A DNA stretch of 64,000 bases from Neoconidiobolus thromboides FSU 785 (taxonomy: Eukaryota; Fungi; Entomophthoromycota): positions 62,001 through 126,000 of the forward strand of contig MU626299.1 in the NCBI GenBank assembly GCA_025603075.1. The letters are read 5' to 3'. The notes beneath the pieces are model-generated. The model saw only the letters and a program-made list of their open reading frames with translations. It searched no databases and had not been told where the DNA came from. Of this stretch, positions 7,645-61,528 are shown in pieces. The position numbers and the translations under genes were made by a program. Numbering within the stretch: position 1 is the stretch's first letter; each line of letters begins with the position of its first letter.

Positions 7645-7962
7645 ATGAGATTTGATGTAAATCGACTACTTTTAATGGCTATTACTTTTAGTATAGTTAA
7701 TTGTTTTCTAGTGGAATTAGGTAATTTAAAACAAGATGGTTTTAATAACGTACCCAAAGAAGCTGTTGATGGAATCACTTTTGACAATGATGCTGTTGTC
7801 GCTTTGTTCATAAATAATGAACAGGAGTTAGAAAAGGAGAGCATTGAAAAAAGGATTCTAGTCAAAAGAGACGGTGGCGGCCTTAATATTCCCATTGTTG
7901 GTGATGTGCTATCACTATTAAATATTGGCTCTTGGTTTGGAATTCAAGGGTTAGGATTATAA
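7645..7962 (+). CDS. Secreted prepropeptide (105 aa): signal, acidic propiece, KR, then a 30-aa amphipathic peptide DGGGLNIPIVGDVLSLLNIGSWFGIQGLGL
   Basis: ATG preceded by AAAA; TATAAATA about 65 nt upstream; hydrophobic N-terminus; EQELEKESIEKRILVKR precedes the IPIVG motif shared with other genes in the window. Confidence 0.85.
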   Translation: MRFDVNRLLLMAITFSIVNCFLVELGNLKQDGFNNVPKEAVDGITFDNDAVVALFINNEQELEKESIEKRILVKRDGGGLNIPIVGDVLSLLNIGSWFGIQGLGL

Positions 7963-9094
7963 TTAATTAGGGTTAGATAATTTTATTTATAATGCTTAAT
8001 ATTCATAACCCTTATAATTTGGAATTCTAATTTGGAGTTTCGATATTTTTACAATAAACAACGTTCAAATCTACTTTCTTTACAATTTTATAACCTTTTA
8101 CATTTTATTAATTACTTACTAATATTTTACAATATTGAAATGTGTATGAGAAACAGAACTTTTGAGAAACAGTGTAATTGTCATAAAAACAGTAAAAAGA
8201 TAAACAAAACTGATAACCCAGTAAATTAACTGATTCTCAATTATAAACCATTTCTTTATAAAATTAAGTAAAATAAAACTCAAAGAACATTAATGAAAAA
8301 TAAAACTTTCAAAATATCTACTTCTAGATAAAGGTGTTATATTTACATGCAATCATTTAATACATAAACAAGAACATCACAGGCGACTTTAAAGTTGATA
8401 GTGTATTTTCCTATAAAAATATACCTATCGTAATTAAAACATTTATTCATTACATAACTAAAATTTCAAATATGTATATCGGTAATGTTTATTTGAGAAA
8501 AAAATCAGTTCAAAATAATAACAATGAACATAACTATAAAATCTACCTGTAATAAATGCTTGAAAATTAGTAGACAAATGATAATGATTAATATAAAAAG
8601 TTAATATTTTTCAAAATTCTCATAATTTATAATAATAAAGATCGCAGATATATAAAATTAAAAAATTCGTTATAGCCGTCATTTATTTTAGCTGTAGCAA
8701 TCTTCGTCATTATCATTTGCCTTTACTAAAGTATACAATATTTAAAAAATTTGTCCTAAAAAGTGAAGGGGTAAACTTTTTAGAACGAACCTTTTAAGCA
8801 CTGTAGATATGCTATATAATTAAGGCTAAATTGTTATATTGACTTTATATCTGTTTTATTATATTTGCAACTGTCTTTCTAAAAAATCAGGGCTTTTGTT
8901 GCATATTGGAATAGCTCAAAACCTTATACATCAAAATTATCGTTAGTAATATAAACTTTTTTAACATTAAATCAAGTTTCCAGTAAGATTATATGCCTTA
9001 GGGGATAGGTTTGGTAAATAAACTTAATAGCAAGTATTGAAATATTTTCTAAAAATGTCAATAAAATAAATCATAAATTTCAACCATACAATAA

Positions 9095-11688: not shown

Positions 11689-12027
11689 ATGAAATTTTCC
11701 TCCTTTATCTTTATCACTACTATTGTTTCCTTAACAAATGGAGCCGCCATCCAGTTAGAACGTCGTAAATCGTTTATTGAAACTCATCAAGAACATGGAC
11801 ATTTACCCGGTGGTAGTAACAATCCAGGTATTACGGCTTTAATTCCACAACTGATGGCCATGATAGGTGGTAAAAATCCAGCTCAAGTACTCAATGAATA
11901 CAATCAAAAAGCTGATGAAAAGAATGGTAAAGAGTATGGAGGTTCAGGCTCAGATGGGGGTTCTAAGGGTGGACTTATGTCTTCTTTAGGTCTTGAAGAT
12001 ATCCCTATCGTTGGTGGGTTAATGTAA
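11689..12027 (+). CDS. Small secreted protein (112 aa) with RR site, His patch and C-terminal GSDGG...IPIVGG motif
   Basis: Likely start MKFSSFIFITTIVSLTNGAA at 11689 (the ORF track starts at an upstream TTG); LERR then ETHQEHGH; C-terminus GGSGSDGGSKGGLMSSLGLEDIPIVGGLM shares motifs with the 49.9-64 kb array. Confidence 0.85.
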   Translation: MKFSSFIFITTIVSLTNGAAIQLERRKSFIETHQEHGHLPGGSNNPGITALIPQLMAMIGGKNPAQVLNEYNQKADEKNGKEYGGSGSDGGSKGGLMSSLGLEDIPIVGGLM

Positions 12028-14364
12028 CGGGTTTATTATTATACTTCAATAAATTTTTACTTATATAATAGCAAGGACCTTTTTTATGATTTCATTTCAA
12101 TTCTAAATTAGCCAGGGAATAATTTTATTTCATTCTCAATATTATTAATGGATTTGAAGATTTATTATTTAAAATAGATTGGATTAAACTAGAATGGTTT
12201 ATAGGTTATTATAGCTAAATCACAATTTTCAATTTAAATTTAAATTATTTAATAAAACTAATACTATTGTTATTCTTTGTGAAATTATTTTACTATAAGC
12301 TACAATGACTAATAACTTTTTTGGCATTTTACCAAAACAGTGCATGCTTATAAAAGTATGATGAAAAAATTCAATTGACAAGCATTATCTTAGACACATA
12401 TCTATAAAAAAAAATTAACTATAGGAATATACAGAAAAGCTTAGCCAATCTAATCAGTTAGAAAGTTTGTTTTGAGGTGTCTTTTGTTTCACATTTTTGT
12501 CCATTTTTTGACAAATAAATAAAAAATGACTTGAGATTCTGCGGAAACTTGTCATTTTTCAATTAAACTGCTAATATTGTCTTTAAACTTAAAAATTAAG
12601 ATCAAAAAGCGTTAAAATCTATAATATATATACTATTTATGTATAAGGTTGTAAAGTAAAATGGAGGTGCCAATGCAGTTTGGTAAATATTAATCGTACT
12701 ATATGTAATAAGCTGTTCCCATATCTCTTCTGTGGTTTACACTAGTGTTCATGAAATCCTTTTGCTTTTATAACACTTTTGATCCATTCTTTAAGGTACA
12801 ATGCCCAACATTTACATCAACTACTATTTTATTTAGGGGCATCTTACATAAACTAAAGCTAGGGAATTTCTAAAATATCACTTAAATCGGTTCTTAATTA
12901 GACTATTAGTGCTTTCGTGCTGTTTATTTTGAGACTTTAGTATCTTTAGATAGAAGATTCGATAAGACTATCGAAAGAATAAAAGTAAAAATATACTAAT
13001 GTAGTCTCTATTAAATAGTGTATTTTATATTATATATAGTTGGAGGATAGGCGAGTATAGAACTAAAACAGAGGAGGATATAGTATTTAATAAAAGATTA
13101 ATTGATATAGACAGTTTGTACTAACTTATTATTAACCGTCTATTACTTGTTTTGTTCAGTTAATTGTTTTATTTTCATCAACATGAAAGGCTTTGAATTC
13201 TTTGGATATTTGGGCTTTTGTTAATACCTTAGAAAAAAAGTGGGGCTGTATTTCGAATGATCTGATATTAATGAAAGTGAAAGTTTGGATACTGGATTAG
13301 TGTCAGCGGATAATCCAGATAATGAATCATATTTTCGAATCTAATGTATCAAAAAAATGGTTATGAAATTGTATTTCATGTGAGGAATTGATATAAAACT
13401 AAAACAATAATGGTAATAGTAACAGTAGAATCGAAAAGAGTATCAAAAACGATATTCAGTCAAGTAAATCAATAGATTAATTAAATCTAGATTATAAAGG
13501 AGCGGTATAGAATTGTACTTCATGTGATAAATCAATAGTTATAGACTATAGAAATAATAATAAGATGATTTGAAAAAAGATTGAAGATAATGGGTAATCA
13601 AATAGGCAAATAGTTGATCCGAATTCGGGGTACAGAAGATAGAGGTTGCTGCAATGTATTTTATACAACAGAGCTATAATTAGAAAACACAATATAATAA
13701 AAATTTAAAGAGAGGGTTTAACCATCGAGTAATTAAATAGTTATTTAAGTAAACAAATGAATTAATGCAGTCTAGAATAAAGAATAAATTTACATAAATA
13801 AATATATGACATAATAAGAAAAAATAACATGTTTTTATAAATGATATAATAAGATAAAAATATCTAATTATTTTTAAAGAGGATTCCAACCATCAAATAA
13901 TCGGGGATATGATTAAACCTTTTTAAAATCGATATAATTTACTTAATTTGATAACTTCAGCACAATGATTTTGACTAAAATTTAATGCATTCACATAATA
14001 TAACGTTAATAAAGTTATTAATAAAAGTTTGACTTTGATGAGCAATAATTAATATGAATGATAGTGGCTTCCAATTCTAGAATCAATCGATGAAATTAAT
14101 TAATATCAACAGTAATACAATTCAATTCATTATTACAATTTATTATGTTTAAATTTGTTTTTAGATTAAACCTCTGAATTTCAAAGTTGACTATTAAACC
14201 GCAAGTCAACTATTTTTAGTTGATTAATAAAGGACTAAAATTATGGTATAAAAACATCTTCAAATAACATTAAATTCAGTATAAAAATAACATCTATCTA
14301 TTGATTAGATATTACTTAATAAACAATCATCTTTTTGACAAAGATCTTTATACAGCCAACTAAT

Positions 14365-15771
14365 ATGGATTATTCATTACAAGTAATTAGCCCAACTCAA
14401 GCTACCTTCTTTCCTTCTCCAAAGCAGAAAAAGACAAGCAATTTAAAATTATTAGACCCAAGTTTATTTTCTGATCCTGGCTTAAAAGAATCTGTTAAAC
14501 GTACCTTTTCCGCTTTATTAAGTGAAAAACCAAGTCTTAAATCTTACTTCAATAACCTACCAACATGTGATGCTTTAACCATGATTAAAAAAGAACTCGA
14601 AAATGGTATGGAAGATTCCTTCTTAGTCGGAGATTTAGGCGAAACATATCGTATGTATAAGTTATGGACAGAAAATTTACCTATGGTCAAGCCTTTTTAT
14701 GCAGTGAAATCGAATCCAGATAGTAGTATGTTGAAGTTAATGGCAGCTATTGGGATTGGATTTGATTGTGCTAGCAAAAAAGAAATAAACACCATGTTAC
14801 AACATGGAGTTAAACCAGAGGATATCATCTATGCTAATCCATGTAAACAAGTATCTCATCTCAGATTTGCTAGACAAAATTCAGTAAAAAAGATGACCTT
14901 TGATAACTTGGAAGAATTACATAAGACCCATAAATACTATCCCGATGCTGAATTATATTTACGTATATTACCAATGGATTGTAACTCTAAAGTACCTTTT
15001 GGCGAAAAATTTGGTGCTGAAGTGAATGGATCTTGCGTTGATTTATTAAAAACAGCCAAAGAATTAAACTTGAATGTTACTGGTATTAGTTTTCATGTAG
15101 GTAGTGATTGTTTAAACCCACAGTCTTATGTAGAAACTATTAGAAGATCAAAATTAGTATTTGATCAAGCCAAAAAATTAGATATTAATATCAAAGTATT
15201 AGATATTGGTGGTGGTTTCCCAGGACATCAAAACAAGAAGGAATTTATTGAAATCGCCAAAGCAGTAACTGAAGCTTTAGATTTATATTATCAAAAAGAA
15301 GACGTGTCATTTATTGCTGAACCTGGTAGGTTCTTTGCTGCTTCTTATTTCACTTTAGCTACAACTGTTATTGGTAAACGTGTTTGTGAATCCAATGATG
15401 ATTATAAATCTAAAAGTATCATGTATTATTTAAACGATGGTGTATTTAAATCCTTTGCTGAAGGTGCATTTATACCTCAAATTTTATATAAGCCTAGGAT
15501 CTTAAAAAGAGGTGATGAAATCTATCCAAAGATTGAATCTACAGAAAATGATGTCGAATGCTCTTTATGGGGTCCTGCTTTAGGTGCTAAAGATAAAATT
15601 AATATTGAAAAAGGATTGAAATTACCAGAACTCAAATTAGAAGATTGGCTATATTTTGAAAATATGGGATCATATTCTACTTGCTTTAATATGGAATTTA
15701 ATGGTTTTGAACAATCGCATAAAGTTTATATTAATACCGAGAAAGAAGGAATTAACAAACTTTTAAAATAG
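14365..15771 (+). CDS. SPE1: Ornithine decarboxylase-like protein (group IV PLP enzyme, 468 aa) with non-canonical catalytic loop
   Basis: PFYAVK (PLP Lys), GFDCAS, IIYANPCK, KFGA, SFHVGS, LDIGGGFPG, AEPGRFF and YYLNDGV are all present; WGPTCDGLD is replaced by WGPALGAKD. First ATG is at 14365. The symbol denotes family only. Confidence 0.9.
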   Translation: MDYSLQVISPTQATFFPSPKQKKTSNLKLLDPSLFSDPGLKESVKRTFSALLSEKPSLKSYFNNLPTCDALTMIKKELENGMEDSFLVGDLGETYRMYKLWTENLPMVKPFYAVKSNPDSSMLKLMAAIGIGFDCASKKEINTMLQHGVKPEDIIYANPCKQVSHLRFARQNSVKKMTFDNLEELHKTHKYYPDAELYLRILPMDCNSKVPFGEKFGAEVNGSCVDLLKTAKELNLNVTGISFHVGSDCLNPQSYVETIRRSKLVFDQAKKLDINIKVLDIGGGFPGHQNKKEFIEIAKAVTEALDLYYQKEDVSFIAEPGRFFAASYFTLATTVIGKRVCESNDDYKSKSIMYYLNDGVFKSFAEGAFIPQILYKPRILKRGDEIYPKIESTENDVECSLWGPALGAKDKINIEKGLKLPELKLEDWLYFENMGSYSTCFNMEFNGFEQSHKVYINTEKEGINKLLK

Positions 15772-17259
15772 GAGTAGTTTTATAGTTTAATAAATAGTTT
15801 TATATGTTTAATTGATTTGTCTTAATTTTTGATTAAAATAATGTGCTACTATTTTTAAAGAATCTTCTTATACAACACTACCCACTTTCAATAATTAACA
15901 TAGTTAAAGTTATGATAAAGCTTTATAATATATTTATATTTTAATCTACTGAAATAAGTTAACATAAAAGCCTTTTAAAACAGTTATTAAAATCAAATTA
16001 TGTACTACTTGATTAATACACAATGTAAACATGTAATGAACTAATGTATATTAAGTAACTTAATAGTTTAAATAAAAAGTTAATTTACTATCTTATATAA
16101 TAGTAACAACGGCTTTTAAGTATAGTTTGTTATCATATTTTAAGGTTTTAGAACTATTACTTGTTTACATCAGAAAAAAGCGCAATCAGACATCCACCTC
16201 TATTCAATAGATGAAGGCCTTTAGGGCTAACAATTAGAACTCAACAAAAATAGACCTACTAGGCCCCAATCATCATCGAGGATTAACAATATGCACGAGG
16301 CACTCAGTTTTAACTATAAATTGCTCTAGCTCGTTGATGATAGCAAAGCATTAGCTTAAACTAATGCAATAGCTCACCAGGACTTTCATCACGGCCAAGT
16401 AGCCCAGGACTGAGTTCAATAAAGAACAAAAATATTAAGTTTATTATTCAGTTATTGTAAATATATTAATATGTTATATTATATTAGACAAAGCTACTTA
16501 AAATAGCTATAAATACCTTAGCCAAATAATTTTTTTAAATTAATTCTAATTCAATTACTAATATATTTCCTTAGTACTAGTATTTCTATATTTAGTTACT
16601 TTAATATATAAGAATGATTTTTTATTTGAGGGATTTATTAATGTTTTTCCGCTTAACAGCAATAAACCAAAGATGATATCCTCATGTGCTTATTGTTATT
16701 GTATCAAAGATAAGTATTTTTTGGCATCGCTTGTTTATATTGAAGATTTGATCTTTTTAAGATAAAAAGTAAAATGAGGAAGACATGAATTCAAATTAGA
16801 TCAAGACTCAATGAAAAAGTTAGCTTTCTGAGTTTAACACTTAAATGCTAATATATTATTTTAGTAGGATTTAATGTGTAATTAGTTATGTTTCAGCTTT
16901 TCAGGTAAGAGTTTCCACCGTTTCTTAATTGTTGTTTATACCCAAGGATGGATTAGTTTTATAGTAAAGACTAAGAAAAACTTGGTAAATAATCTCAATA
17001 ATATAGGATCCAAAGTTGAGAATTTTCAAAGTTGTCAAGTCAACGCAACAATAAAAGATTCAAATACTTGATATTAGGGAATATTAAATTCTAATTACAG
17101 TTTTAATTAATAATATCAATCTAATAAAATTATTGTTATATAGCTAACTCCTTATTACCAAACTTCAATCTTTCCAAATATCACAGAAAACAAACTTAAA
17201 TATTTAAAAAAATTTAGAATTAGTCTTTATTTATTAATTTAATATAATCAATCCTTTTT

Positions 17260-18759
17260 TTAAATCTTAGGTATAACCCATTTTAATAAATACCTAGGAT
17301 CAACCATAGATAATGGATCTCCGACTATTGGAATTTTAACAGCTGGCATCTTCATTTTAGACATATCAATTCCCTTTTTCCCTTCCCCAGCAGTACCATG
17401 ACCAATTTGGGTATCTGCTTTTTGATCTTGGGATTGTTTAGATTCATCGATATTATTGTAGGTTGGGTTTGCTGGGTATTTATTGTTATTTTGATTACTG
17501 CCCTCATAATTAGGATTGGTAGGGTATTTGTTTTGGTTATTGTTATTGTTTTTATTATTATTGTCATTTTGATTATTATTCCTACTATCAACCCCATAAT
17601 CCGCTTTACATTTATAAATCCCATTAGAATTGGTATAAATTGGATAATCTTCAATTTTATCTGACATAGTAACAGCTGCCATTGGAGCATTATTTGGCAT
17701 TGGCATATTAGAATGATCTTGTGTAACAGCTTTGTTGGGCATTGGCATATTAGAATGGTCTTGTGCAACAGCTTTGTTGGGCATTGGCATAGCAGAGTGA
17801 TCTTCATCTCCATGACGGCGTTGCAATTTAGAATGTTTACATGGGGTTTTAATATCCATATTTGCCATATTTGAATGATCTTCAGTAGTTTGGGACTCGA
17901 TTGGAGCACTGAAAGCAGCCATGTTAGGCATCGAGGCACTGTTATCTCCCATGTTCTTTATTGCAGCATCACCAGACATCATATTACCATTCATTTCAGT
18001 GTTTTGACTCATGCTTGGAATATTGGGCATATTTTCCATTGAAGCATCACCAGACATCATAGTACTTTCCATTGGGGCACTATCACTAGCCATATTTTCC
18101 ATTCCTGGCATATCTGGCATATCTTCCATAGTATCCATATTTTGCATAAACGCTTCATTTGGCATATTAACATGATTTTCATCACCATGACGACGTTGTA
18201 ATTTAGAGTGATCACATGGCTGTTTAATATTCATCTCAGACATATTAGAGTGGTCTTGATTAGATTGAGATCCCATTGGACTATTATTGTTCATAGTAGG
18301 CATCTCTTCCATATTAGTCATACTTTCCATACCAGGCATTGATGAATGATCTTCTTCACCATGACGACGTTGTAATTTAGAGTGATCACATGGCTGTTTA
18401 ATATTCATCTCAGACATATTAGAGTGGTCTTGATTAGATTGAGATCCCATTGGACTATTATTGTTCATAGTAGGCATCTCTTCCATATTAGTCATACTTT
18501 CCATACCAGGCATTGATGAATGACCTTCTTCTCCATGACGACGTTGTAATTTAGAATGATCACATGGTTGATTAGTAGCCATATTAGACATCATTGAATG
18601 TCCAGCATCACTATTTGATTCCATTGGATTATTATTATTCATATTCGACATAGTAGAATGATTTTCATTTCCATGGCGACGATATAAACTCAATGGTGAA
18701 GAGCTGGCTTCAGTTATGAGTAAGTATAATGATATTAATTTTAAACCAGTTAAATTCAT
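17260..18759 (-). CDS. Secreted His/Met-rich repeat precursor (499 aa) with five RR-HGxExH units
   Basis: Signal peptide; five L[YQ]RR|HG[NED]E[NGD]H sites; MxxM arrays; YTNSNGIYKCKA module; N/Q-rich region; C-terminal IPIVGD. Confidence 0.9.
   Translation of the reverse strand: MNLTGLKLISLYLLITEASSSPLSLYRRHGNENHSTMSNMNNNNPMESNSDAGHSMMSNMATNQPCDHSKLQRRHGEEGHSSMPGMESMTNMEEMPTMNNNSPMGSQSNQDHSNMSEMNIKQPCDHSKLQRRHGEEDHSSMPGMESMTNMEEMPTMNNNSPMGSQSNQDHSNMSEMNIKQPCDHSKLQRRHGDENHVNMPNEAFMQNMDTMEDMPDMPGMENMASDSAPMESTMMSGDASMENMPNIPSMSQNTEMNGNMMSGDAAIKNMGDNSASMPNMAAFSAPIESQTTEDHSNMANMDIKTPCKHSKLQRRHGDEDHSAMPMPNKAVAQDHSNMPMPNKAVTQDHSNMPMPNNAPMAAVTMSDKIEDYPIYTNSNGIYKCKADYGVDSRNNNQNDNNNKNNNNNQNKYPTNPNYEGSNQNNNKYPANPTYNNIDESKQSQDQKADTQIGHGTAGEGKKGIDMSKMKMPAVKIPIVGDPLSMVDPRYLLKWVIPKI
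17696..17800. repeat. 42-bp (14-aa) coding tandem repeat, ~2.5 copies (DHSNMPMPNKAVxQ)
   Basis: GGCATTGGCAT recurs at 17696, 17738 and 17780. Confidence 0.9.
18185..18543. repeat. 174-bp (58-aa) near-perfect coding tandem duplication
   Basis: CCATGACGACG (RRHG on the minus strand) at 18185, 18359 and 18533; the two intervening 58-aa units differ by one residue. Confidence 0.9.
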
Positions 18760-19239
18760 TAGTTTTATTTTTTATAATTTTTTATTAATATTATAGAGTT
18801 GCCATGGGCTGTTATATACCCTTTTGAATTAGCTTGAGTTATTTATTATGTATATTTTTAATCATTGTTATTAATGTCATTATCCTTTCCTTCATTTATT
18901 ACTGGATTATTTTATAGCGGGTTGACAATTAATAGTCCAATTTCAATACCTTTGGTAATTTGATATAAAATATTACAAATTTATATTTTATAATAAAACT
19001 ATTTTTGGATCAAATTTATTAGAATTGAGGAAAGATATTCTAGCAATTACAAGTGTTAAAATCATGCTAATAAATTAATCTAGAAATCTTTCTAAAAACC
19101 AATGTCGGGTTTAAAGTTCGTATTGTTAATATTATAAATAAAATAAATTGTAATAAAATAGCAAAATTATTAATCATCCTCAGTTTTTATTTTTATTTAT
19201 AACTATATTGATGAATTGTTTAAAAAACAAGTACCATAT

Positions 19240-19338
19240 GGGGCTGTTTTTTTTGGGTTCATTACTTTTTCTACTTTTTAAGCACTATTTGAGTGGAAAA
19301 ATTGCTAATAAAATTCTTAAATACAAAAATACATCCCC
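19240..19338 (+). mobile_element. ~99-bp MITE copy
   Basis: GGGG...CCCC ends; ATAT/ATAT flanks. Confidence 0.8.
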
Positions 19339-19607
19339 ATATCTTGAAATTCTTGAAAGAAAAATTCCTAAGTGGTTGATTAGTTGAAAAGAATTCCCAA
19401 TAATTAATGGGAAGCGGAAACAACTTAAGGCCTTAGCCCTTTACTTTCTTAATTATCCATGAATGTTTCAATGGCGGCCCAGCCGAAGCATCATATCATA
19501 TGATCTTTCCTTCAACAAAAATAATATTATTAAACATAAAATAAACATATTAATAAGCTTTGTAACTCAAAGCTCATTTATCACCTTAAAACAGATATTC
19601 TACCAAT

Positions 19608-21678
19608 TTACATGAAATCAGGCTTCAATTGATTCATCATAATAGGTTCATGATATTCACTTCTCAATAATTTTTGAATAATAATTAAGGAATCCTCTTT
19701 CACTCTGGACCTCTTATTTTTTAAATATTCCTTCTGTTTTTCCTCCATAAAACTTGAAGGAGCAGGCAGCTGAAAGCTTGGAAATAACGGAAAAGAATTC
19801 GATTTATCGTTACCCATCGCTTTAACGCCATAGTGTAAATTGAAATTATTTAGTTTTTCATACTCTTTTTGTAACTCTTTGTTGGTGGGATCAATACTAG
19901 CTAATTGTCGATAATCCTTTTTACTTTGTTCATGTAAGGTGTTAGGGTCTAATTCTCTAACATCTACTTCAATTTTCTTTCTTTTCTTATTTATCGCTGG
20001 TCTATTTACAATATTATTAATATATCCCTCCGTCTTTTTAGAATCTCCAAATCCACTGTTCATTTCCAAACAAATTTTTGAAATCTCTAGTAGTGCTCTC
20101 GATCTTCCTAATAATCCTTCAAAGTTCAACGGGCTAATTTCTAAGCATTTACTAAAATTTTCCGTTGCACATTCAAACTCTTTTAAAACCATTTGGCATT
20201 TTCCTAATTTTAAATAAAGTAATTCTAACATATTCAAGTACTCTTTTTTACACCCTATTTTTTCAATTTCGATTAAAGCCTTGATAAACCTACTCCTTGC
20301 AATTGTTGAGCTCTTTATCGATTCCCCAAATACAAATAAACCCATTTCAAAATGGACTATTGGATTATCATATTCAGGATGCTTTTTTACTCTTTTGTTA
20401 AGTAAATTATAATAAAGTATACCCTCCTCTGTGTTTTTAGTTATTCTATAATATTTAATTAATAATACATATGCCATAATAGTTTCTTTTTCTAATGTTA
20501 CTATATTTATTAATAATCTTAATACTCTTTCATAGCTTTGTAGCTCCATCATAATGTCACTAATAATCAACGATCCCATTATGTAATTTGGATATTTGTC
20601 TATTATCATTTCAAAATAATCATAACATTTATCACACCTTTCATTAAATTTAAAAATAATTCCATTAACTAATAAATATTGAGCTGAATTTTCATCTGTA
20701 TCATGTATTAATTGTCGAATCCTGATCAATCCTTCTATATCCTTTAAATAATATAGACAATAAATAAATTCATCCAAGCTTTCTATGTTAGGTGTATATC
20801 TATTAATATATACTTCATATATATCTTGACATTTTTTAAAATCTCCTTTTTTAAACGCTATTTTACCTATAGTTAATATTAGATTATTGTCATATTCCCC
20901 ATTGTTGATATCAAACTCCAAATACTCTTTCTCCTCCATTTCATTTAAAAAATAAATCAAATACTCTTTCCTCCTCTCTAAAAATTTTTGCTCATCATCT
21001 TCCATACTTTGATGCCAATTATTTAAAGTGATTAATTCCCTTATCGAAGTTCTATCCAATAACTTATATTTCATTAAATAAGTTAATGGCTCTCGATTAA
21101 AATAGTTCATTTGGAATCCTTTAGTTAAATTATTTTTACCCCTGAAGAGCGCCCTTTTAGAAATAAATGCCAGACCACGTAATACATACAATTGACTTAT
21201 ATTCTGTCTCTCCTCTATTCCATAATCATTATTATTGTTTATACTTTCCAAAAACTTTCCACTCCCAATCACTTTATCATATTGTTTTAATCCAAGATAA
21301 CATTTCCATTCTAGAATTAAATCCTCAATTTCATACTCTTTCATACTTTCTAAACACTCTTCATACTTATCTAACTTATAATAGATATCACATACAAATA
21401 ATCGGTCGTTAAAATTACAATGTTCTAAAGTTATTATATGAGTTGCCGTGGCTAATGCTGAAGTGTAATCAGCTTTTTTCATTTTTATAACCCTTTTGAG
21501 TCGTAATCTATCCATATGATTTAGTTGATTTATACTTGTTGTTAACGAATGAATATCATTATCATCATAATTGTCATTGAGCTCTGGATAGACGTTTTGA
21601 TCATATTGTTGTTCGGACACTATGGGTTAAGGTTAGATAAATGCACTGATTATAATGGGTTTTATGTTGGGACTTACT
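19608..21678 (-). CDS. TPR-repeat protein, divergent APC/C subunit Cdc16/APC6-like (670 aa)
   Basis: By-eye similarity to Cdc16 as I recall it: DRLRLKRV...DYTSAL...ND...YY; YVLRG; DNPIVHFEMG...F...A...F..AL..I..IG...E.L...LG...LKEF..A...P.N. The start codon is probably split by a 58-nt intron at 21677-21620. Confidence 0.7.
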
Positions 21679-22459: not shown

Positions 22460-22876
22460 TTACTCTAAGCTACCCTTCTTTTCAGAATCTTGTTCAATTT
22501 TCTCCACAATTCTACCTGCAATACCTTCCTCTTCTCTGTCTTGAACAATCTCATCCCCAGGTTGCATTTTAGCCAAAGCAACTTTAATGCTTCGACCCTT
22601 AATGTAAGCCCCGTTTAATTCCTCTAACACTTTATCGGCTACACTACTTTCATAGTTAACAAAAGCAATACCTTTGAATCGACCTAATGGATCTGTTGGA
22701 TAACTTAAGCGATAAATGGTACCATATTTACTGACTAAATCTTCTAACTCTTCACGTTGTAAATTAAAGGGTATGTTACCAAGATATAACGCTTTTTGTT
22801 GTAAGCTACGGAAGCTGGTGTACAATGGTGTTTGAAAGCTGGACTTCAATAATGGTAATTTAGTGAATAAACTCAT
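22460..22876 (-). CDS. Single-RRM RNA-binding protein, probably mitochondrial (138 aa)
   Basis: RNP2 LYLGNI and RNP1 KGIAFVNY; N-terminus is rich in S/L/K/R with no acidic residues, like a mitochondrial presequence. Confidence 0.85.
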   Translation of the reverse strand: MSLFTKLPLLKSSFQTPLYTSFRSLQQKALYLGNIPFNLQREELEDLVSKYGTIYRLSYPTDPLGRFKGIAFVNYESSVADKVLEELNGAYIKGRSIKVALAKMQPGDEIVQDREEEGIAGRIVEKIEQDSEKKGSLE

Positions 22877-24118: not shown

Positions 24119-25840
24119 TTAATGCCCATAAACTGGTAAAACATACGTTGGTTGATTATCAGGCTTAGTATGATGCTTAGTATGGTGTTTTTTATGCTTA
24201 CGCTTGGATGATGCGGATATGACTTGATCACAATCTTGAGTGCCTGTTGGGGAATTAGAGTCATAATTTGAAGCAGAAGTTGGAGAAGTATCATAATCTG
24301 AAGTGGAAGTAGGATAACTATTATCATTCTCTGGAAGACTGATATTGGGATTATAATTAGGATGAGCAAAGGGGAGGGGCTTAAGAATGGGAAGATTGAT
24401 GATTGGTAATTTGATATTTAAATGAGAAGAAAGATCTGGACGTTTAGCTAAACAGACTGGAGATTTAAATCCAATTTGATTATAAGCGGAAATAACTTGA
24501 GCCAATTTAGATTCTTGTTCACGTACTAAAGTTAATGGGTAATTGTTCATTCTAGCCCAACTTTCAGGCAATGGTTTAGGTAACCTTAATTTATATGGAT
24601 CTTGACGATCATTATAAGTTGGTCCTGTGATAGGGATGTTGTTATAAATTGGAACACCAACTCCGATTGTAATGTTAATATTGAGCTGATTGTATTTGAT
24701 TGGTAAGTAGCTTGGAATAGGAATATAAGAACTATAAGTGGGATAAGATCCATGGCTACTAGTGCTCGATGATGGAGTAGATGAGGCTGATCCGGAAGAT
24801 GAAGAAGTAGAGGTATTTGATCCAGAAGTAGTAGAGGAGCTGCCGCTTGAGCTTGAAGACGATGCGACACTTGAATTTGAGGAAGGTAAAGTAGAAGTAG
24901 GAGTGGCACTTGAACTTGAAGAGGAAGAAGTGGGATTAGGCATTGTATTGTTAACTTGAGGTGGTTTAGTAATATCAACGCCATCTTGGGTATAAGTATA
25001 ACAGAGGGAGTTAATATTCAAGCCCGCAGAAGAAGGAACATTAAAAGGTGCTTGTATGTCATTAAGACCTACATCACGGTTATTTTGATTTTTGCCGCTA
25101 ATAGTATTAGCTAAACTTGGGTTTGCCTGCTGCCAATCATGGTATATTTTATCAATAAAAGCATGATGGAGCCAAAATAATGGATCGTTAGTGCTAGCCA
25201 TTGTTTGCATATCACCACCAACTCCATTATGAACTGAACCGTGTGGTGCGTATTCAATTTGTTGCCTCAATTGATCATAAGTTTTTGAGTTTGTAATAAG
25301 CGATTGGATAGCTTCTGGGGAGTAAAAGGCAGATATTGTTCCATCACCTCCGTTAAACTTACGAGCTAAGCAATGTGGGCTGGCGTTGATATTATAGTCA
25401 TAATAACATTGCCAGTTAGCAAATTGGCCTTTAGTAACACAGTTATTTTGGCCAGTGCCTTCACCACCAAAGTAGTTATCTGAAAGGACACCACTTAACT
25501 CTGGAGCTTGGGAATCATATGACCAGTTCCAATAAGGTAAGGCTACATTTGGATTTACAGCTTGTAATGCTTTCTCAAACTCACGTAAGAACAAGCGATG
25601 CCATACTAAAAAGTTAGCAGTACCATGGTTATTTGGAGCATAAGTTAAATGAGTTTTAACAAAACTGGCATATTTGCTGGGCTGATTACCAGAATTTAAT
25701 GTTCTCACAGCTTGAAAAAATGCTTGGATTTCAGCACTACTTAGCTGTCTTATTTCTTTTCTTTGGTAAACAGTATTACATTGACCATCAATTGAAGCTG
25801 AAAGATAAAGGAATGCGCAGAGGATAGATTTCAAACCCAT
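24119..25840 (-). CDS. Secreted tyrosinase / type-3 copper protein (573 aa) with Ser/Thr linker and long C-terminal region
   Basis: Signal peptide; CuA His residues in KTH...NNHG...FLVWHR; CuB HGSVH...DPLFWLHHAFID; poly-Ser linker; His/Lys-rich end. Confidence 0.95.
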   Translation of the reverse strand: MGLKSILCAFLYLSASIDGQCNTVYQRKEIRQLSSAEIQAFFQAVRTLNSGNQPSKYASFVKTHLTYAPNNHGTANFLVWHRLFLREFEKALQAVNPNVALPYWNWSYDSQAPELSGVLSDNYFGGEGTGQNNCVTKGQFANWQCYYDYNINASPHCLARKFNGGDGTISAFYSPEAIQSLITNSKTYDQLRQQIEYAPHGSVHNGVGGDMQTMASTNDPLFWLHHAFIDKIYHDWQQANPSLANTISGKNQNNRDVGLNDIQAPFNVPSSAGLNINSLCYTYTQDGVDITKPPQVNNTMPNPTSSSSSSSATPTSTLPSSNSSVASSSSSSGSSSTTSGSNTSTSSSSGSASSTPSSSTSSHGSYPTYSSYIPIPSYLPIKYNQLNINITIGVGVPIYNNIPITGPTYNDRQDPYKLRLPKPLPESWARMNNYPLTLVREQESKLAQVISAYNQIGFKSPVCLAKRPDLSSHLNIKLPIINLPILKPLPFAHPNYNPNISLPENDNSYPTSTSDYDTSPTSASNYDSNSPTGTQDCDQVISASSKRKHKKHHTKHHTKPDNQPTYVLPVYGH

Positions 25841-27787: not shown

Positions 27788-28810
27788 TTAACTACTATTT
27801 TGCTGAATCCATTGAGCATAAGTATTTACACGTGCAAATACAGAAGGATAATCTGGATTAAGACATTTTAAGTCCTTAACAAAAGAAGTAACGCCAATAA
27901 TAGTGTTATCAATAACAAGTGGACCTCCAGAGTCACCTTGACAAACAGATGAGCGGCCTTCACGATAACCAGCACACAAATGATGAGACTTAGTTAAACC
28001 TTGATAGGCAGCATTACAAGACTCAAAAGAATATACAGGGAGATTAGCTTCTTGGAGCTTTGAAGCCAATTTTTGTTGATCGTTTGAATCAACCCTTCCC
28101 CAACCTGCAAATTTGGTTGAAGTACCTTCGCGATCACCTGTATTTTGGGTATCAATTTGGTAGAAATTACGTGTACTAACTGGGGCCGCTAATTTCCATA
28201 TCGCAACATCATATTGAATAAAGCCGGCTGAGGTATAACTAGGATGCTTAATGATTTGGCTCACTCTATGTTCGGTGTATGAGCCATCTGGCCCACCTTT
28301 GATCTGCCCTTGGCCTTGGCCTTGTTTTGGCTGCTGCTGTCCTTGTGGAATTTGTGGTTGTTGCTCATGTGGTTGTTGCTCTTGTGGTATCCACGGCATT
28401 TGTGGTTGTTGCTCTTGTGGTATCCATGGCATTTGTGGTTGTTGCTCTTGCGGTATCCATGGAATTTGTGGTTGTTGTCCTTGTGGTGGCCATTGACGCC
28501 TTTGTAGGTTTCCACCGGCATATGCCCACACAGAGACAGAGGCAGGAGAATGTTCGGAACAATGGGCAGCAGTTAAAACAGTGTTAGCATTCAAGAGAGC
28601 ACCACCGCAGGAATGTCCTCCATTAACACGTAATGAAACCAAAGATGGATAGTTTGCCCATGAACCGTCAGAGCCATTGATGATTTTGCTAGATGGAGTG
28701 TCATTCGATTTTGTTGAATTTCTATCGGCTGGTGCTGCTTGTGAAAATGCAGTTAAAGTAGCAATAACAACAACTTCAAGTGTTTTCATCAAAATTTCCT
28801 TCTGTACCAT
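27788..28810 (-). CDS. Secreted S1 (chymotrypsin-fold) serine protease with elastase-like pocket and internal Q/P repeat insertion (340 aa)
   Basis: Signal/propeptide, K|IING activation site, TAAHC, YDVA, CQGDSGGP; pocket residues read S189/V216/S226. Confidence 0.95.
   Translation of the reverse strand: MVQKEILMKTLEVVVIATLTAFSQAAPADRNSTKSNDTPSSKIINGSDGSWANYPSLVSLRVNGGHSCGGALLNANTVLTAAHCSEHSPASVSVWAYAGGNLQRRQWPPQGQQPQIPWIPQEQQPQMPWIPQEQQPQMPWIPQEQQPHEQQPQIPQGQQQPKQGQGQGQIKGGPDGSYTEHRVSQIIKHPSYTSAGFIQYDVAIWKLAAPVSTRNFYQIDTQNTGDREGTSTKFAGWGRVDSNDQQKLASKLQEANLPVYSFESCNAAYQGLTKSHHLCAGYREGRSSVCQGDSGGPLVIDNTIIGVTSFVKDLKCLNPDYPSVFARVNTYAQWIQQNSS
28350..28485. repeat. 33-bp (11-aa) coding tandem repeat PWIPQEQQPQ[MI]
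   Basis: GGTATCCA recurs at 28386, 28419 and 28452. Confidence 0.9.
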
Positions 28811-39540: not shown

Positions 39541-41106
39541 TCAATTATAATTTAATACAAAACTCTTACCCATTACTAAATGAGGATTAATATGGCAATG
39601 AGATAACCATTTTCCTGGATTATCAGCTTTAAGTCGGATAGCATACCAGCCACAGAAAACAACATCTCCCACAGTCCTTGGGTTAGCAAAATGAGTAAAC
39701 GTATCTTGTAATACAAGATTCTTTTTATGAGATAAAATAGTATCTTGAATCTTGATTGAGTCAGTAGAAGGATCATAAGGTAAAGTGCCATTGGAAACTA
39801 CATAAAAAGAGTGACCATGTAAATGCCAAGGATGAGTAACGCAATTACCTCCTATGGGTTGAAAATGTTGTAATATAATTTGTATATTAGTATTATTTTT
39901 TATAAAATAATCTTTATTTTCCAATTGATTATTAATTAGAAATTTAGGTACATTATTAGCTATTCCATTAGTAATGTTGATAATAATTTCCTGATCAATT
40001 TGTTTAGGTACTTGATAAATATGAGTATCTTGAACATCGATACAATTGCTTCGATAAAATTGTGAATTTTTCAATTTAGGTAAAATCCATAAATTCTCAG
40101 TTAAATTTAATCTCTCAGGCACATACAACTTTTTCTTTAATTTATCTGTTGGTTCTGCTCCATTATAATGTAATATTGCTACTCCATTATTAGGTAATAG
40201 AGGATTACTATTACTACCTGTAATTCTAGTCATCATATAATAATTATTAATAGGTTGATTCATTTTAACTAATATAGAATATCTCTGTGCTGGATGTAAT
40301 TCAATTCGATTAGTTAATATAGGTTCAATTAAAGTGCCATCTACTTCAATTACTTTGAATTCTATATGATTTTGAATTTCAAAGATTAAATTAGATAGTC
40401 CATTAGCTGCAATAATTCGAATTCGATAAATTTTATTAAAATCTACATTTTTTACATAATAACCCTCATTAAACAAATCCTTTTCTTTAGTGTTAGTATT
40501 GTTTTCCCAAACATCAAAAGTTCTACCATTAGTTAAGATAGATTGGGATGGAAATGGAAACTGAAAGGGTGGATTTAATAAATCATGATAAATTAAACTG
40601 GTATTTTTATGCCAACGTTCACTTAAAATTAAAGTAAATTCCTCATCATAATAATAGTTTTCATTGTATTCAATTAACTCTTTTAGAAACTTCTCTTTGA
40701 TAATCAATGCCCCATAAATTACTTGAATATCCAAATCAGTATGAGCATGATACCAATAAGTCCCACTTTGTTTATATACGTTAAATTGATATTTAAATGA
40801 ACTGTTTGTTAAGATCCTTGCTTGGGTTAATTCAGGTACACCATCCATATTGTTACTATTTCTCTGCTCAATTCCATGCCAATGAATAGTTATATTTCGA
40901 TGACTTTGATTATTAATTAATATATTAACTTGATCATGTTGTTCAATTTCAATAGTAGGACCTGGATAAACTCCATTAATAGTTATACCTTCAAAATTAA
41001 AATTATCTACTGCAATATCTTGATCTTTAACTTCCCATGAATAATAATGGACTTTACTATCAAGAGTATTAAGAAAACAGAATAATATTATGATTATGTA
41101 ATTCAT
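39541..41106 (-). CDS. Secreted multicopper oxidase (laccase/ascorbate-oxidase-like, 521 aa)
   Basis: Signal peptide; all four copper motifs: IHWHG, WYHAH, HPWHLHGH, HCHINPH. Confidence 0.95.
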   Translation of the reverse strand: MNYIIIILFCFLNTLDSKVHYYSWEVKDQDIAVDNFNFEGITINGVYPGPTIEIEQHDQVNILINNQSHRNITIHWHGIEQRNSNNMDGVPELTQARILTNSSFKYQFNVYKQSGTYWYHAHTDLDIQVIYGALIIKEKFLKELIEYNENYYYDEEFTLILSERWHKNTSLIYHDLLNPPFQFPFPSQSILTNGRTFDVWENNTNTKEKDLFNEGYYVKNVDFNKIYRIRIIAANGLSNLIFEIQNHIEFKVIEVDGTLIEPILTNRIELHPAQRYSILVKMNQPINNYYMMTRITGSNSNPLLPNNGVAILHYNGAEPTDKLKKKLYVPERLNLTENLWILPKLKNSQFYRSNCIDVQDTHIYQVPKQIDQEIIINITNGIANNVPKFLINNQLENKDYFIKNNTNIQIILQHFQPIGGNCVTHPWHLHGHSFYVVSNGTLPYDPSTDSIKIQDTILSHKKNLVLQDTFTHFANPRTVGDVVFCGWYAIRLKADNPGKWLSHCHINPHLVMGKSFVLNYN

Positions 41107-46786: not shown

Positions 46787-46877
46787 ATATAGTAAGGAAA
46801 AAAAAAGTAAATTTAGCAATAATAAGTAGATTTGTTTTTTTTATTAATTTTCATAATATAAATACTCACTTAACAAC

Positions 46878-47537
46878 TTAAAGTATACCGCCTAATAAAG
46901 AATCTAATCCTAAAGATGAAACTAAATCACCAACAATAGGTAAACCCCCTAACATCCCTCCTTTCTTTTCAGGTATGGCTTTATCGCTTTTGTTAGGACT
47001 ATAATCACCCTTGGGTTGTTGCTGAGTATTTATTTGATGGCCATCCGAGTGTCCAGCTTGTTGGGTTTGGTGTTGTGTCTGTTGGTTATTTTGAGTTTGT
47101 CCGTTATTTTGTTGACTTTGTTGTTGATTGTTCTGATTCTGTTGTTGGTTTTGTTGGTTATTCTGATTCTGTTGGTTATTCTGATTCTGTTGTTGAGTCT
47201 GTTGATTATTTTGGCTTTGTTGGGTTGGTTGATTACTTCCATCTTCTGGATAAGTAGCTTTACATTTATAAATCCCATTTGGATTAGTATAAATCTGGTA
47301 ATTCTCTTCTTGGACTTGAATATTAGCATCGGTATTTAACATTGCGGCATGTGGGGTAGCTGTATTTGGGTTGTTTAGAACAACGCCGTTATTACCGTTG
47401 TTGTTTGTAGCCATATCTTGTCCCATTGGCATATTACTCATACTACCATGATCTTCATCTCCATGACGTCGAATCAAATCAATTGAACGACTTAAAGTTA
47501 AATTAATGAATAACGCTAAAATTAATTTGGTGTTCAT
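46878..47537 (-). CDS. Secreted family-A protein (219 aa): RR-HGDEDH, YTNPNGIYKCKA, N/Q-rich region, LPIVGD tail
   Basis: Signal peptide; paralogous to 48050-48691, 60893-61528 and to both ends of 17260-18759. Confidence 0.9.
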   Translation of the reverse strand: MNTKLILALFINLTLSRSIDLIRRHGDEDHGSMSNMPMGQDMATNNNGNNGVVLNNPNTATPHAAMLNTDANIQVQEENYQIYTNPNGIYKCKATYPEDGSNQPTQQSQNNQQTQQQNQNNQQNQNNQQNQQQNQNNQQQSQQNNGQTQNNQQTQHQTQQAGHSDGHQINTQQQPKGDYSPNKSDKAIPEKKGGMLGGLPIVGDLVSSLGLDSLLGGIL

Positions 47538-48049: not shown

Positions 48050-48691
48050 TTAATAGATTCCGCCTAATAATGAATCAATTCCTAAAGAGGATGCTATATT
48101 ACCAATCACAGGTATTCCACTTAATAAACTAGTTTTCTTTTCAGGTAAAGGTGTGGGAGTTTTAGTTGATGTATAAATATCTTTATTTTGTGGTTGATTA
48201 TCCATTTGATGTCCATCGTAATGCTCTGGATGTGGAGTATTTTGATTATTTTGAGTTTGTCCATTATTTTGTTGACTTTGTTGTTGATTTTGTTGGCTCT
48301 GCTGATGATCCTGATTTTGTTGTTGATTGTTTTGAGCTTCTCCGCTATTCTTTTGACTTTGTTGTTGACTTTGCTGTTGACTTTGATTCTGTTGTCGATT
48401 ATTTGAATCTTTTGTATCTTCTGGATATTCTGCTTTACACTTGTAAATACCATTAGAATTTGTATACATCTCATACTTATCTTCATGTAGATTAACAATT
48501 GGATCACTACTAAATTTAGTTTCATGTGGAACAACAGCATTTTCATTACTATTTCCACTTGGACTAATATCTTCTTTAACTGGCATGATACTCATACTAC
48601 CATGATCCTCACCTTCGTGACGTCGATTCAAAGCAATAGAACGACTAAGGGTTAATTGAATGAATAAAGCTAGGAGTAATTTTGAGTTCAT
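48050..48691 (-). CDS. Secreted family-A protein (213 aa): RR-HEGEDH, YTNSNGIYKCKA, N/Q-rich region, IPVIGN tail
   Basis: Tandem paralog of 46878-47537 with the same domain order. Confidence 0.9.
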   Translation of the reverse strand: MNSKLLLALFIQLTLSRSIALNRRHEGEDHGSMSIMPVKEDISPSGNSNENAVVPHETKFSSDPIVNLHEDKYEMYTNSNGIYKCKAEYPEDTKDSNNRQQNQSQQQSQQQSQKNSGEAQNNQQQNQDHQQSQQNQQQSQQNNGQTQNNQNTPHPEHYDGHQMDNQPQNKDIYTSTKTPTPLPEKKTSLLSGIPVIGNIASSLGIDSLLGGIY

Positions 48692-49900: not shown

Positions 49901-50206
49901 TTATCCATCTATTGGAAGTTGATTAACAATTCCATACCCTTTATTATTATCTGTATTAATAATAGAAACTATATTTGATACCAATTCATCATTATTACTA
50001 GTGATACTATTGACTGTGGAAACGATACTAGTAATCGGATTGCTATTACCAAAGATAGGTTCCATTAATCCACCTTCAGAACCAGAACCAAAAACAGTGT
50101 TAACTATATTATTTAATGGAGAATTAGCATTATCTCTACGTTGAAGAGGAAGCGAAAAGATAGGGGAGGAAGTAAAGAGGAATAATACTAAAGTGTTGTA
50201 TTTCAT
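49901..50206 (-). CDS. Secreted family-B Gly/Leu-rich protein (101 aa)
   Basis: Signal peptide, PLQRR, GSGSEGGLME..FG, GIVNQLPID. Confidence 0.85.
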   Translation of the reverse strand: MKYNTLVLFLFTSSPIFSLPLQRRDNANSPLNNIVNTVFGSGSEGGLMEPIFGNSNPITSIVSTVNSITSNNDELVSNIVSIINTDNNKGYGIVNQLPIDG

Positions 50207-57649: not shown

Positions 57650-58141
57650 CTAAACTCCAACTCCAATGTCAGAAAGAATATTACCAGCTACTGGAATCCC
57701 TGAAACCAACCCATTATTGCCAGGTCTACCTAAAATTTCTCCAGCCACTGGAATCCCCCCTAACAATCCATTATTATTACTTCCTCTACCAATTGGTGTT
57801 TCATCCATTGGGAGGCTAGTAACAATCCCATTACCAACTGTCATTTTGTTTTTATTACCTCCGGTGACTGGTAAATTGGATAATAATCCATCATTGTTAC
57901 CACCTACAACACCACCAAGTAAACCTCCAGTCCCCCCAGTCCCTCCAGTTACTCCATTAAGTAGCCCCCCAATTGGCCCGCCCCCACCTGTTAAGGATTC
58001 CAATAATCCACCATCGGATCCACCACCTAAAACACTGCCTAATAAACCGCCCAATAAACCAGCGTCTGCTTTACGCTGAAGGGGTGAGGCACCAATGGTG
58101 CATAAAGTGTAAAGTGTAAAGATTACTACATTAAATTTCAT
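57650..58141 (-). CDS. Secreted family-B protein, full-length form with IPVAG tail repeats (163 aa)
   Basis: Signal peptide, PLQRK, GGGSDGGLLESL, GNGIVTSLPMD, then LLGGIPVAGEILG and LVSGIPVAGNILSDIGVGV*. Confidence 0.9.
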   Translation of the reverse strand: MKFNVVIFTLYTLCTIGASPLQRKADAGLLGGLLGSVLGGGSDGGLLESLTGGGGPIGGLLNGVTGGTGGTGGLLGGVVGGNNDGLLSNLPVTGGNKNKMTVGNGIVTSLPMDETPIGRGSNNNGLLGGIPVAGEILGRPGNNGLVSGIPVAGNILSDIGVGV

Positions 58142-60892: not shown

Positions 60893-61528
60893 TCAATTTA
60901 CTATAGTATTAACTAAAGAATCTATATTTAACGATTGAAGTAAATTACCAACCACTGGTAGCTTAGCTATTAACTCAGGTACCTCTTGTGGTAGGAAGTT
61001 GGGGATTTTGGTTGATGTGTAGCTAGGGTTGGGTTTTGGTTGATTACTCATTTGGTTGGCATTGTATTGATCTGTATGTGGAGTTTTTTGGATGCTTTGG
61101 GTTTGACTATTGTTCTGTTGACTTCGTTGAGTCTGTTGAATGTTTTGGTTTTGTTGTTTGTTATTCTGAGCTTGGCTGTTGTTTTGTTGATTTTGCTGTT
61201 GATTACTTTGACCTTGTTGGCTTCGCTGCATCTGTTGATTATTAAGTCTATTTCCACCTTCTGAACACCCAGCTTTACAATCATAAATATCATTTGAATT
61301 GGTATAAGTTGAAATCTTATTGTCTTGTATTTGAGCAATAGGAACTTTACTAAATTTAGCTTCACGTAGATCAGCAGCGCTTCCATTATTATTTTCACTA
61401 GCATTTATATCTTCATTGAATGGCATAATACTCATACTATGATCCTCATTTCCATGACGTCGATTTAAATTAATTGAACGACTTAGAGTTAAATTAATGA
61501 ATAAAGCTAGGAGTAATTTTGAATTCAT
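60893..61528 (-). CDS. Secreted family-A protein (211 aa): RR-HGNEDH, YTNSNDIYDCKA, N/Q-rich region, LPVVGNLLQSL tail
   Basis: Paralog of 48050-48691 (near-identical signal peptide and shared upstream sequence). Confidence 0.9.
   Translation of the reverse strand: MNSKLLLALFINLTLSRSINLNRRHGNEDHSMSIMPFNEDINASENNNGSAADLREAKFSKVPIAQIQDNKISTYTNSNDIYDCKAGCSEGGNRLNNQQMQRSQQGQSNQQQNQQNNSQAQNNKQQNQNIQQTQRSQQNNSQTQSIQKTPHTDQYNANQMSNQPKPNPSYTSTKIPNFLPQEVPELIAKLPVVGNLLQSLNIDSLVNTIVN

Follow-up and report, generated by a model that had tools for sequence, protein, structure and literature searches.

The window analysed here is a stretch of 64,000 nucleotides (nt) from contig MU626299.1 of Neoconidiobolus thromboides FSU 785 (GCA_025603075.1). 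Its focal gene is an open reading frame (ORF) at 17260-18759 on the minus strand, an uninterrupted run of 499 codons specifying a Met- and His-rich protein of 499 amino acids (aa); the GC content is 26%. The protein opens with a putative signal peptide of about 18 residues (MNLTGLKLISLYLLITEA; 18706..18759, minus strand). This was called heuristically from the hydrophobic N-terminus, which aligns with the N-termini of three paralogs described below (AlphaFold helix 3-18), and the cleavage point was placed by the -3/-1 rule. Translation and family alignment define a short propeptide behind it, SSSPLSLYRR (18676..18705, minus strand), which ends in the first L-x-R-R site. A translation scan found only five [KR]R pairs in the whole protein, all of them RR (aa 27, 73, 131, 189 and 314). 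Each carries a P4 Leu (LYRR in one case, LQRR in four) and is directly followed by H-G-[NED]-E-[NGD]-H, while PC[DK]HSKLQ stands ahead of the RR at the last four of the five. An earlier note on this DNA had described a signal peptide, five such RR sites and the PC[DK]HSKLQ motif before the last four, all of which the translation bears out.

Cutting after each RR would give pieces of 46, 58, 58, 125 and 184 aa, the first four being the lengths reported in the earlier note. All lie on the minus strand. Unit 1 (aa 29-74, 46 aa including the RR; 18538..18675) has an HGNENH head, six Met and a PCDHSKLQRR end. Unit 2 (aa 75-132, 58 aa; 18364..18537) has an HGEEGH head, Met at positions 9, 12, 15, 18, 21 and 24, the motif DHSNMSEM and again PCDHSKLQRR. 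Unit 3 (aa 133-190, 58 aa; 18190..18363) differs from unit 2 at 2 of 174 nt; it is a recent tandem duplicate, and the two copies are not independent. Unit 4 (aa 191-315, 125 aa; 17815..18189) carries an HGDENH head, 22 Met, a PCKHSKLQRR end and a pI of 4.1, and contains a 9-nt (DMP) slippage array (18105-18124, minus strand) that is polymorphic among strains. Together these units (aa 29-315) make up 58% of the protein. The C-terminal piece (aa 316-499; 17260..17814) begins with an HGDEDH head and holds three copies of DHSxMPMPNKAVxQ with a 42-nt period, the block YTNSNGIYKCKA, an N-rich linker, a KK pair and an IPIVGD tail. There are five Cys in the 499 residues, one per unit.

The gene is real, transcribed and intronless. 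Two libraries, X4 and X6, bear the tentative label 'RNA?'. X4 contigs cover 17459-18211, 18182-18349 and 18494-18924 with zero differences to the window, and X6 contigs cover 17244-17716, 17694-18116 and further pieces, so that the RNA contigs extend over 17244..18924 (minus strand), unspliced and with no splice joints within the ORF. In the intergenic region downstream (16600-17069) depth is zero in both RNA runs versus 20-60 in the DNA runs; this flank is silent although the DNA runs cover it, which argues that the X4 and X6 signal comes from RNA and not from contaminating DNA. The earlier proposal of a secreted-type precursor thus applies to a transcribed gene with a predicted signal peptide. 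Within 17244-18116, the focal transcript occurs in X6 in two forms. The first has about 99% identity to the window; the second is about 9% diverged and has a 24-nt in-frame insertion at 17535. This diverged form might come from a second nucleotype, or from a paralog of recent origin.

In other strains or labels every indel of the focal gene is in frame: one of 24 nt at 17535, and one of 9 nt at 18104 that is an extra period of a Met array. The substitutions listed inside the ORF number 27 (12 synonymous and 15 nonsynonymous). None of the 15 alters a Met, a His, a Cys or an RR, where about three would be expected to do so by chance, which is weak evidence.

The composition of the protein is unusual for the window. 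Met accounts for 11.8% (59 residues), His for 4.2% (21) and Asn for 14%, whereas Met does not exceed 3.8% in any of the other 13 ORFs of at least 200 aa. Over aa 29-360 a Met-Met spacing of three residues was observed 23 times versus 8.3±2.4 in shuffled sequences, and 23 was reached in none of 5000 shuffles. Spacings of 6 and 9 were also enriched in this test, and spacings of 1, 2, 4, 5, 7 and 8 were depleted. The period-3 arrays had been pointed out in the earlier note and are correct on translation, both in the 58-mers, at the positions given above, and in the 125-mer, where a Met at position 9 is followed by seven at positions 15-33. DHSxM occurs seven times and HxxM 11 times in the protein.

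Tandem Repeats Finder reported a 174-nt period (2.3 copies, 96% matches) and further arrays of 42 nt (DHSNMPMPNKAVxQ), 9 nt (DMP) and 18/21 nt (N-rich). The 174-, 42- and 9-nt periods all keep the His/Met motifs intact. Since the codons that separate the Met codons are varied, the periodicity is not that of a simple microsatellite, though slippage still contributes. Tandem arrays at four periods and indels that vary among strains are also what would be expected if the gene were a fast-evolving, low-complexity orphan generated by replication slippage in a 26% GC genome and devoid of a specific biochemical function. Against this stand its transcription, a frame that is intact in all variants, and an enrichment of Met and His beyond what AT bias favours.

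The conservation of particular motifs in related genes argues further against such an origin. A six-frame motif scan of the window followed by alignment revealed three paralogs on the same strand as the focal gene, making four family members in the window. Paralog 1 (219 aa; 46878..47537, minus strand) comprises a signal peptide, LIRR, HGDEDHGSMSNMPM, YTNPNGIYKCKA, a Q/N-rich linker and an LPIVGD tail. Paralog 2 (P0002, 213 aa; 48050..48691, minus strand), with LNRR and HEGEDHGSMSIMP, and paralog 3 (P0003, 211 aa; 60893..61528, minus strand), with LNRR and HGNEDHSMSIMP, have the same layout. The order common to the family is a signal peptide, a propeptide of 7-10 aa leading to L-x-R-R, an H-G-x-E-D-H-x-x-M-x-x-M head, YTNSNGIYKCKA, an N/Q-rich linker and a tail. 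In the paralogs the head takes the form H-[GE]-x-E-D-H-(x)-S-M-S-x-M-P and is followed by a variable stretch of about 40 aa, then by Y-T-N-x-N-x-I-Y-x-C-K-A, a Q/N-rich linker of about 90 aa and a tail of the pattern (L/I)P(V/I)(V/I)G(D/N)..S...DSL. In the alignment, identity to paralog 1 is 42-55%, and the invariant columns (L..RRH..EDH..M..S.MP, YTN.N.IY.CKA and P..G) are exactly the shared blocks.

All eight heads, five internal to the focal protein and three in the paralogs, keep R-R-H together with Glu4 and His6, and in each a Met stands at position 8 or 9. A second Met three residues on is kept in seven of the eight, unit 4 having Glu there. The conservation of RR|H over eight copies argues, at the level of sequence, that the cleavage site is important, and so is the His that it would leave at the N-terminus. 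The whole mature paralog aligns with the last 184-aa piece of the focal protein, which by this alignment is a homolog of the full family protein and no leftover. From the same comparison, the focal gene has the family layout with four extra copies of a set of three parts: head, Met-rich spacer and a PC(D/K)HSKLQRR junction that is new. It is newly recognised here not as a singleton but, on its sequence, as the expanded member of a lineage-restricted four-gene family, and it illustrates how a polyprotein can originate when one functional module is multiplied in tandem together with its own cleavage site.

Paralog 1 is covered by an 806-nt X4 RNA contig and paralog 2 by shorter partial contigs of X6. 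The 806-nt contig skips 76 nt (46804-46879), starting inside the stop codon; the skip lacks GT-AG ends and is flanked by a direct repeat, TACTTT. Without these 76 nt the ORF of paralog 1 would continue into a T-rich stretch. The skip resembles a polymorphic insertion/deletion, or else an intron of non-canonical type.

The single-head paralogs, with their linker and conserved tail, resemble surface proteins. The focal protein might likewise remain uncut as a disordered component of the hyphal surface or wall, its Met residues acting as a sacrificial oxidant sink or as spacers and its IPIVGD tail and N-rich linker serving for attachment or assembly. This would agree with the predicted disorder of these proteins and with N/Q-rich linkers, which are typical of wall and amyloid-like proteins (PMC8786786). 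It would leave unaccounted for the five perfectly conserved LxRR|H junctions in a protein of 499 aa that has no other [KR]R, and the LxRR behind the signal peptide of every paralog, and we regard it as unlikely.

Outside this genome no relatives were encountered. A word-seeded protein search and an exhaustive phmmer search of 1.84 billion representatives each returned only the focal protein itself. A profile of the four family members, run against a candidate list that stopped at 8000 entries and in which Q/N words probably predominated, returned no proteins but the paralogs of the window. Two scans of Joint Genome Institute (JGI) metagenome contigs yielded no relatives, and sequence searches of Pfam, NCBIfam and the PDB gave noise only (L36 and INO80 low-complexity matches). 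In the databases searched the focal protein is, by sequence, an orphan whose homologs are confined to the copies in its own genome and to strains. The profile, phmmer, Pfam, NCBIfam and PDB searches likewise assigned it to no characterised non-metal-binding family, an outcome that the earlier note had named as refuting its proposal. Orphan status is compatible with an origin by slippage; since the paralogs share head and tail motifs at about 45% identity, in addition to the points given above, we consider that origin improbable.

Structure prediction gave a consistent picture. The ESM Atlas model of the focal protein has a predicted local distance difference test (pLDDT) score of 0.35, and AlphaFold run on the family alignment gave a pLDDT of 43, with a helix in the signal peptide only (3-18) and no strands. 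The precursor is thus predicted to be intrinsically disordered.

We compared the precursor with fungal Kex2-processed repeat proteins (KEPs), which are defined by a signal peptide, at least three repeats, KR, RR or KK between the repeats, and repeats that occupy at least 15% of the length (PMC6339444). The focal protein has a heuristically called signal peptide (hydrophobic N-terminus, with the paralog helix 3-18 modelled), five heads and a 174-nt period as internal repeats, RR at each unit boundary and no other [KR]R, and a repeat coverage of 58%. These sequence criteria place it among the KEPs. In Mucoromycota such proteins are frequent (PMC7329392), and the resemblance lies in the signal peptide, the three or more repeats, the intervening KR/RR and a coverage far over 15% (PMC6339444, PMC7329392), as well as in the long units, which are commoner among early-diverging fungi. 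It departs from other KEPs in its Met/His-rich cargo with period-3 Met arrays, in the N-terminal His predicted for every product, in lacking the Ste13 (XA/XP) signature, and in having a full-length family protein as its last unit.

The cargo appears new with respect to the literature searched, in which no Met/His-rich KEP cargo of this kind is described. The peptide strings had no match in the text-form sequence supplements of Le Marquer 2019 and Kamel 2017, and a literature search with DHSxM strings gave noise only. Kamel 2017 also depicts, as an image, a histidine-rich 'motif 19' that occurs in four proteins. The earlier statement that no system of this design was known to be described in early-diverging fungi holds for both the sequence and the literature searches.

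We think it probable, from the sequence, that the precursor is cleaved at its RR sites. LxRR or LxRK right behind a signal peptide recurs in ORFs 11689, 49901 and 57650 of the window, all three small and unrelated, and ORF 7645 has KR sites in place of LxRR, which suggests that dibasic propeptide processing is common in this organism. A Kex2-type protease of the late Golgi would cut after each RR, and a Kex1-type carboxypeptidase would then remove the two Arg. Four acidic peptides would result, with lengths of 44, 56, 56 and 123 aa, together with a protein of 184 aa. HG is no substrate for Ste13, so the His would stay at position 1. RR|H is invariant in eight copies, and each product would have a free N-terminal His1 plus His6. 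For the trimmed peptides the predicted pI values are 5.6, 4.8, 4.6 and 4.1 and the Met contents 6, 9, 9 and 22, with four His and one Cys each. Each of the four would have DHSxM motifs and MxxM arrays and, close to its C-terminus, a single Cys-x-His. The 184-aa product would retain three DHSxM motifs and lack both the MxxM array and the Cys-x-His.

Processing of this kind need not imply metal binding. Most KEP peptides have a signalling or unassigned role (PMC6339444, PMC5293756), and SP7-like mycorrhizal repeat effectors offer a comparison. The released peptides could therefore act as signals, effectors or antimicrobials, their Met and His richness being incidental to a disordered acidic peptide. 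The focal gene is effector-like in being lineage-restricted and strain-variable, and the alpha-factor and apidaecin polyprotein precursors are among its ESM feature neighbours, with low scores that fall below the reliable range and make them leads only. Such a role fits poorly with the residues that are conserved in paralogs and copies, namely the classic copper ligands His1, His6, Met9, Met12 and DHSxM. The units, at 44-123 aa, are also far longer than usual signalling peptides, and 11.8% Met at a strict period of three is hard to account for without thioether chemistry. We would give a non-metal role little weight.

The best explanation of the locus, which we advance tentatively and as somewhat short of an even chance, is that it encodes a secreted disordered precursor cut by Kex2 into extracellular copper-handling peptides. 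By analogy with the systems below, the chances that the released products bind copper appear to us evenly balanced. Outside the cell, the head with its His1, His6 and acidic residues would hold Cu(II), and the thioether arrays several Cu(I). Motifs with thioether (Met-only) ligands have an affinity for Cu(I) that is roughly micromolar, so a buffer, sponge or relay of high capacity and moderate affinity would fit better than a tight scavenger.

Three known types of copper-binding protein resemble parts of the putative products. In the N-terminal 14-mer of hCtr1, which has an MDHS.. start and an MxMxxM array, Cu(II) is bound by the N-terminal site, and Cu(I) or Ag(I) by a His pair and by a Met-only motif, the latter active at pH 3.5 (PMC9117721). 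The likeness extends to DHS followed by MxM/MxxM, His and Met ligands, disorder, an extracellular location, and an N-terminal Cu(II) site beside a thioether Cu(I) site. Unlike Ctr1, the focal products would be soluble and multi-copy, with His at position 1 and not 3 and hence no amino-terminal Cu(II)- and Ni(II)-binding (ATCUN) motif. No Pfam Ctr match was obtained, and the family model has no helices past the signal peptide that could represent the three transmembrane helices, with MxxxM and GxxxG, of a Ctr transporter.

The bacterial copper sponges (CopA/CopB of P. syringae, PcoA, PcoE/SilE and the CueO insert) have in common with the focal protein repeated Asp-His-Ser-x-Met and MxxM motifs. 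They are non-cytoplasmic and of high copper capacity, a property that for the focal protein is suggested by analogy. In P. syringae CopA, up to 11 Cu are bound by motifs rich in Met, His and Asp, and for PcoE a role as an early periplasmic copper sink has been proposed (PMC3847284). The focal protein differs in having no sequence homology to them, no multicopper-oxidase domain, a eukaryotic host and a protease-cut polyprotein organisation.

In the histidine brace, copper is held by the amino group and ring nitrogen of an N-terminal His together with a second His (PMC10952591). Proteolysis exposes the N-terminal His of the brace proteins (LPMOs, X325/Bim1-Cbi1 and CopC), as it would here, and a second His is near. 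These are folded beta-sandwiches, whereas the focal protein is predicted to be disordered, its second His is only five residues off, and no homology was found. No sign of an immunoglobulin-like beta-sandwich was found in the models (pLDDT 0.35/43, no strands) or as a Pfam match. A metallothionein is not indicated either, there being no Cys-rich CxC/CxxC clusters and only five Cys per 499 aa. Bim1/Cbi1, located at the fungal surface, binds copper, releases it and acts together with Ctr1 (PMC9258870).

Perhaps, and this we hold more tentatively still than the general explanation, the locus represents a fungal copper system of new design. A single Kex2-cut polyprotein would give rise to disordered metallopeptides with a brace-like His1/His6 start and long MxxM arrays, a protein 'chalkophore' or sponge that arose by head multiplication within a family of secreted surface proteins. 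For extracellular copper, fungi are known to use membrane transporters, folded surface proteins such as Bim1/Cbi1 and, as a third way, small-molecule isocyanide chalkophores. If the proposal is true, a secreted, multi-copy, gene-encoded copper peptide would be a fourth route. In a mycorrhizal fungus, peptides of this kind could have a bearing on the buffering or sequestration of copper by hyphae, in soil and where they meet the plant, and on the supply of metal to secreted copper enzymes.

Several observations weigh against a copper role or against the processing on which it depends. The recent duplication and the 9-nt slippage account for part of the Met periodicity, and the rough dN/dS of about 0.4 from the listed strain substitutions amounts to no more than moderate constraint. 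RR is a weaker Kex2 site than KR. The His1...His6 pair does not form an ATCUN motif and is no proven brace, and several N-x-S/T sequons lie in or beside the motifs, where glycosylation could interfere. The Pfam, NCBIfam and PDB sequence searches gave no homolog of known function. The yeast Mac1-type copper-response element TTTGCKCR has three matches in the window, no more than chance, and none upstream of the family genes. Housekeeping genes separate the focal gene from the tyrosinase and the multicopper oxidase of the window.

These two enzymes were cited in the earlier note as secreted copper proteins of the same window. Both are present, the secreted tyrosinase at 24119-25840 and the secreted multicopper oxidase at 39541-41106 (both minus strand); their linkage to the focal gene is weak, with housekeeping genes interleaved. 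The tyrosinase lies 5.4 kb from the focal gene, with a tetratricopeptide repeat (TPR)/Cdc16-like gene (19608-21620) and a gene for an RNA-recognition motif (RRM) protein (22460-22876) between. All four family genes, the tyrosinase and the oxidase fall within 45 kb, which is weak evidence. A long Ser-rich linker is present in the tyrosinase, and its C-terminal tail (KRKHKKHHTKHHTK) is basic and rich in His and Lys. For the multicopper oxidase, the nearest ESM cluster is from Mucoromycota.

A cytochrome P450 (9095-10435) and an ornithine decarboxylase (ODC)-like pyridoxal phosphate (PLP) enzyme (14335-15771) lie on the other side of the focal gene. In the ustiloxin cluster a Kex2-repeat precursor is combined with enzymes of three kinds, tyrosinase, P450 and PLP enzyme (PMC6514808), and with all three kinds in the window the focal protein could be taken for a dikaritin precursor of the UstA/PhomA type, a peptide made on the ribosome and modified after translation (RiPP), tailored by these neighbours. 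Its units of 46-125 aa compare poorly with the 13-14 aa units and 4-6 aa cores of that class (PMC6514808). A DUF3328 (UstYa) gene was not seen among the ORFs of at least 85 aa at 2.6-35 kb, where an intron-split gene could escape, and 0 of 357 Mucoromycota KEPs have a DUF3328 neighbour (PMC7329392). The Cdc16-like TPR and RRM housekeeping genes break the neighbourhood, and the paralogs are single-headed and without repeats. On the strength of unit length, the lack of a DUF3328 gene, the interrupted neighbourhood and the single-head paralogs this assignment fails, and we judge it very improbable. With housekeeping genes interleaved and no DUF3328 gene seen, the neighbourhood lends no support to a copper cluster or to a RiPP cluster.

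Further along the window is a trypsin-like protease (27788-28810, minus strand), and the window also holds a pyrroline-5-carboxylate (P5C) reductase, a GNAT protein, a ThiS/Urm1-like ORF and an Hsp20. The protease has an insert of about 70 aa, a Gln/Pro/Trp-rich repeat of (Q)PQ(I/M)PWIPQEQQ, right after an LQRR in its catalytic domain. This LQRR was considered as a hint on the use of LxRR and rejected, the activation site being K|IING. A scan of the window for bacterial promoters and terminators was irrelevant in a eukaryotic host. One rhizosphere metagenome run has some 31-letter words in common with the stretch.

Four small secreted-type ORFs combine a dibasic site with the motif (L/I)Pxx[GD], at 7645-7962 (plus), 11689-12027 (plus), 49901-50206 (minus) and 57650-58141 (minus). 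None has the His/Met head. The exact IPIVG tail of the focal family occurs in ORFs 7645 and 11689; (L/I)Pxx[GD] is C-terminal in three of the small ORFs, and in 57650 it is also internal, with three occurrences in the second half. The four may, from their sequences, be part of a wider peptide-precursor family that shares this motif. The ORF at 11689-12027 has LERR followed by a His-rich start (..THQEHGH..) and ends in IPIVGG, and it may represent a further variation on the head theme.

A repeat of about 100 bp (19232-19345), present in very high copy, is located about 470 bp upstream of the focal gene. Its summed contig depth reaches 10^4 to 10^5 in DNA and RNA runs, with many rearranged joints, and it looks like a miniature inverted-repeat transposable element (MITE).

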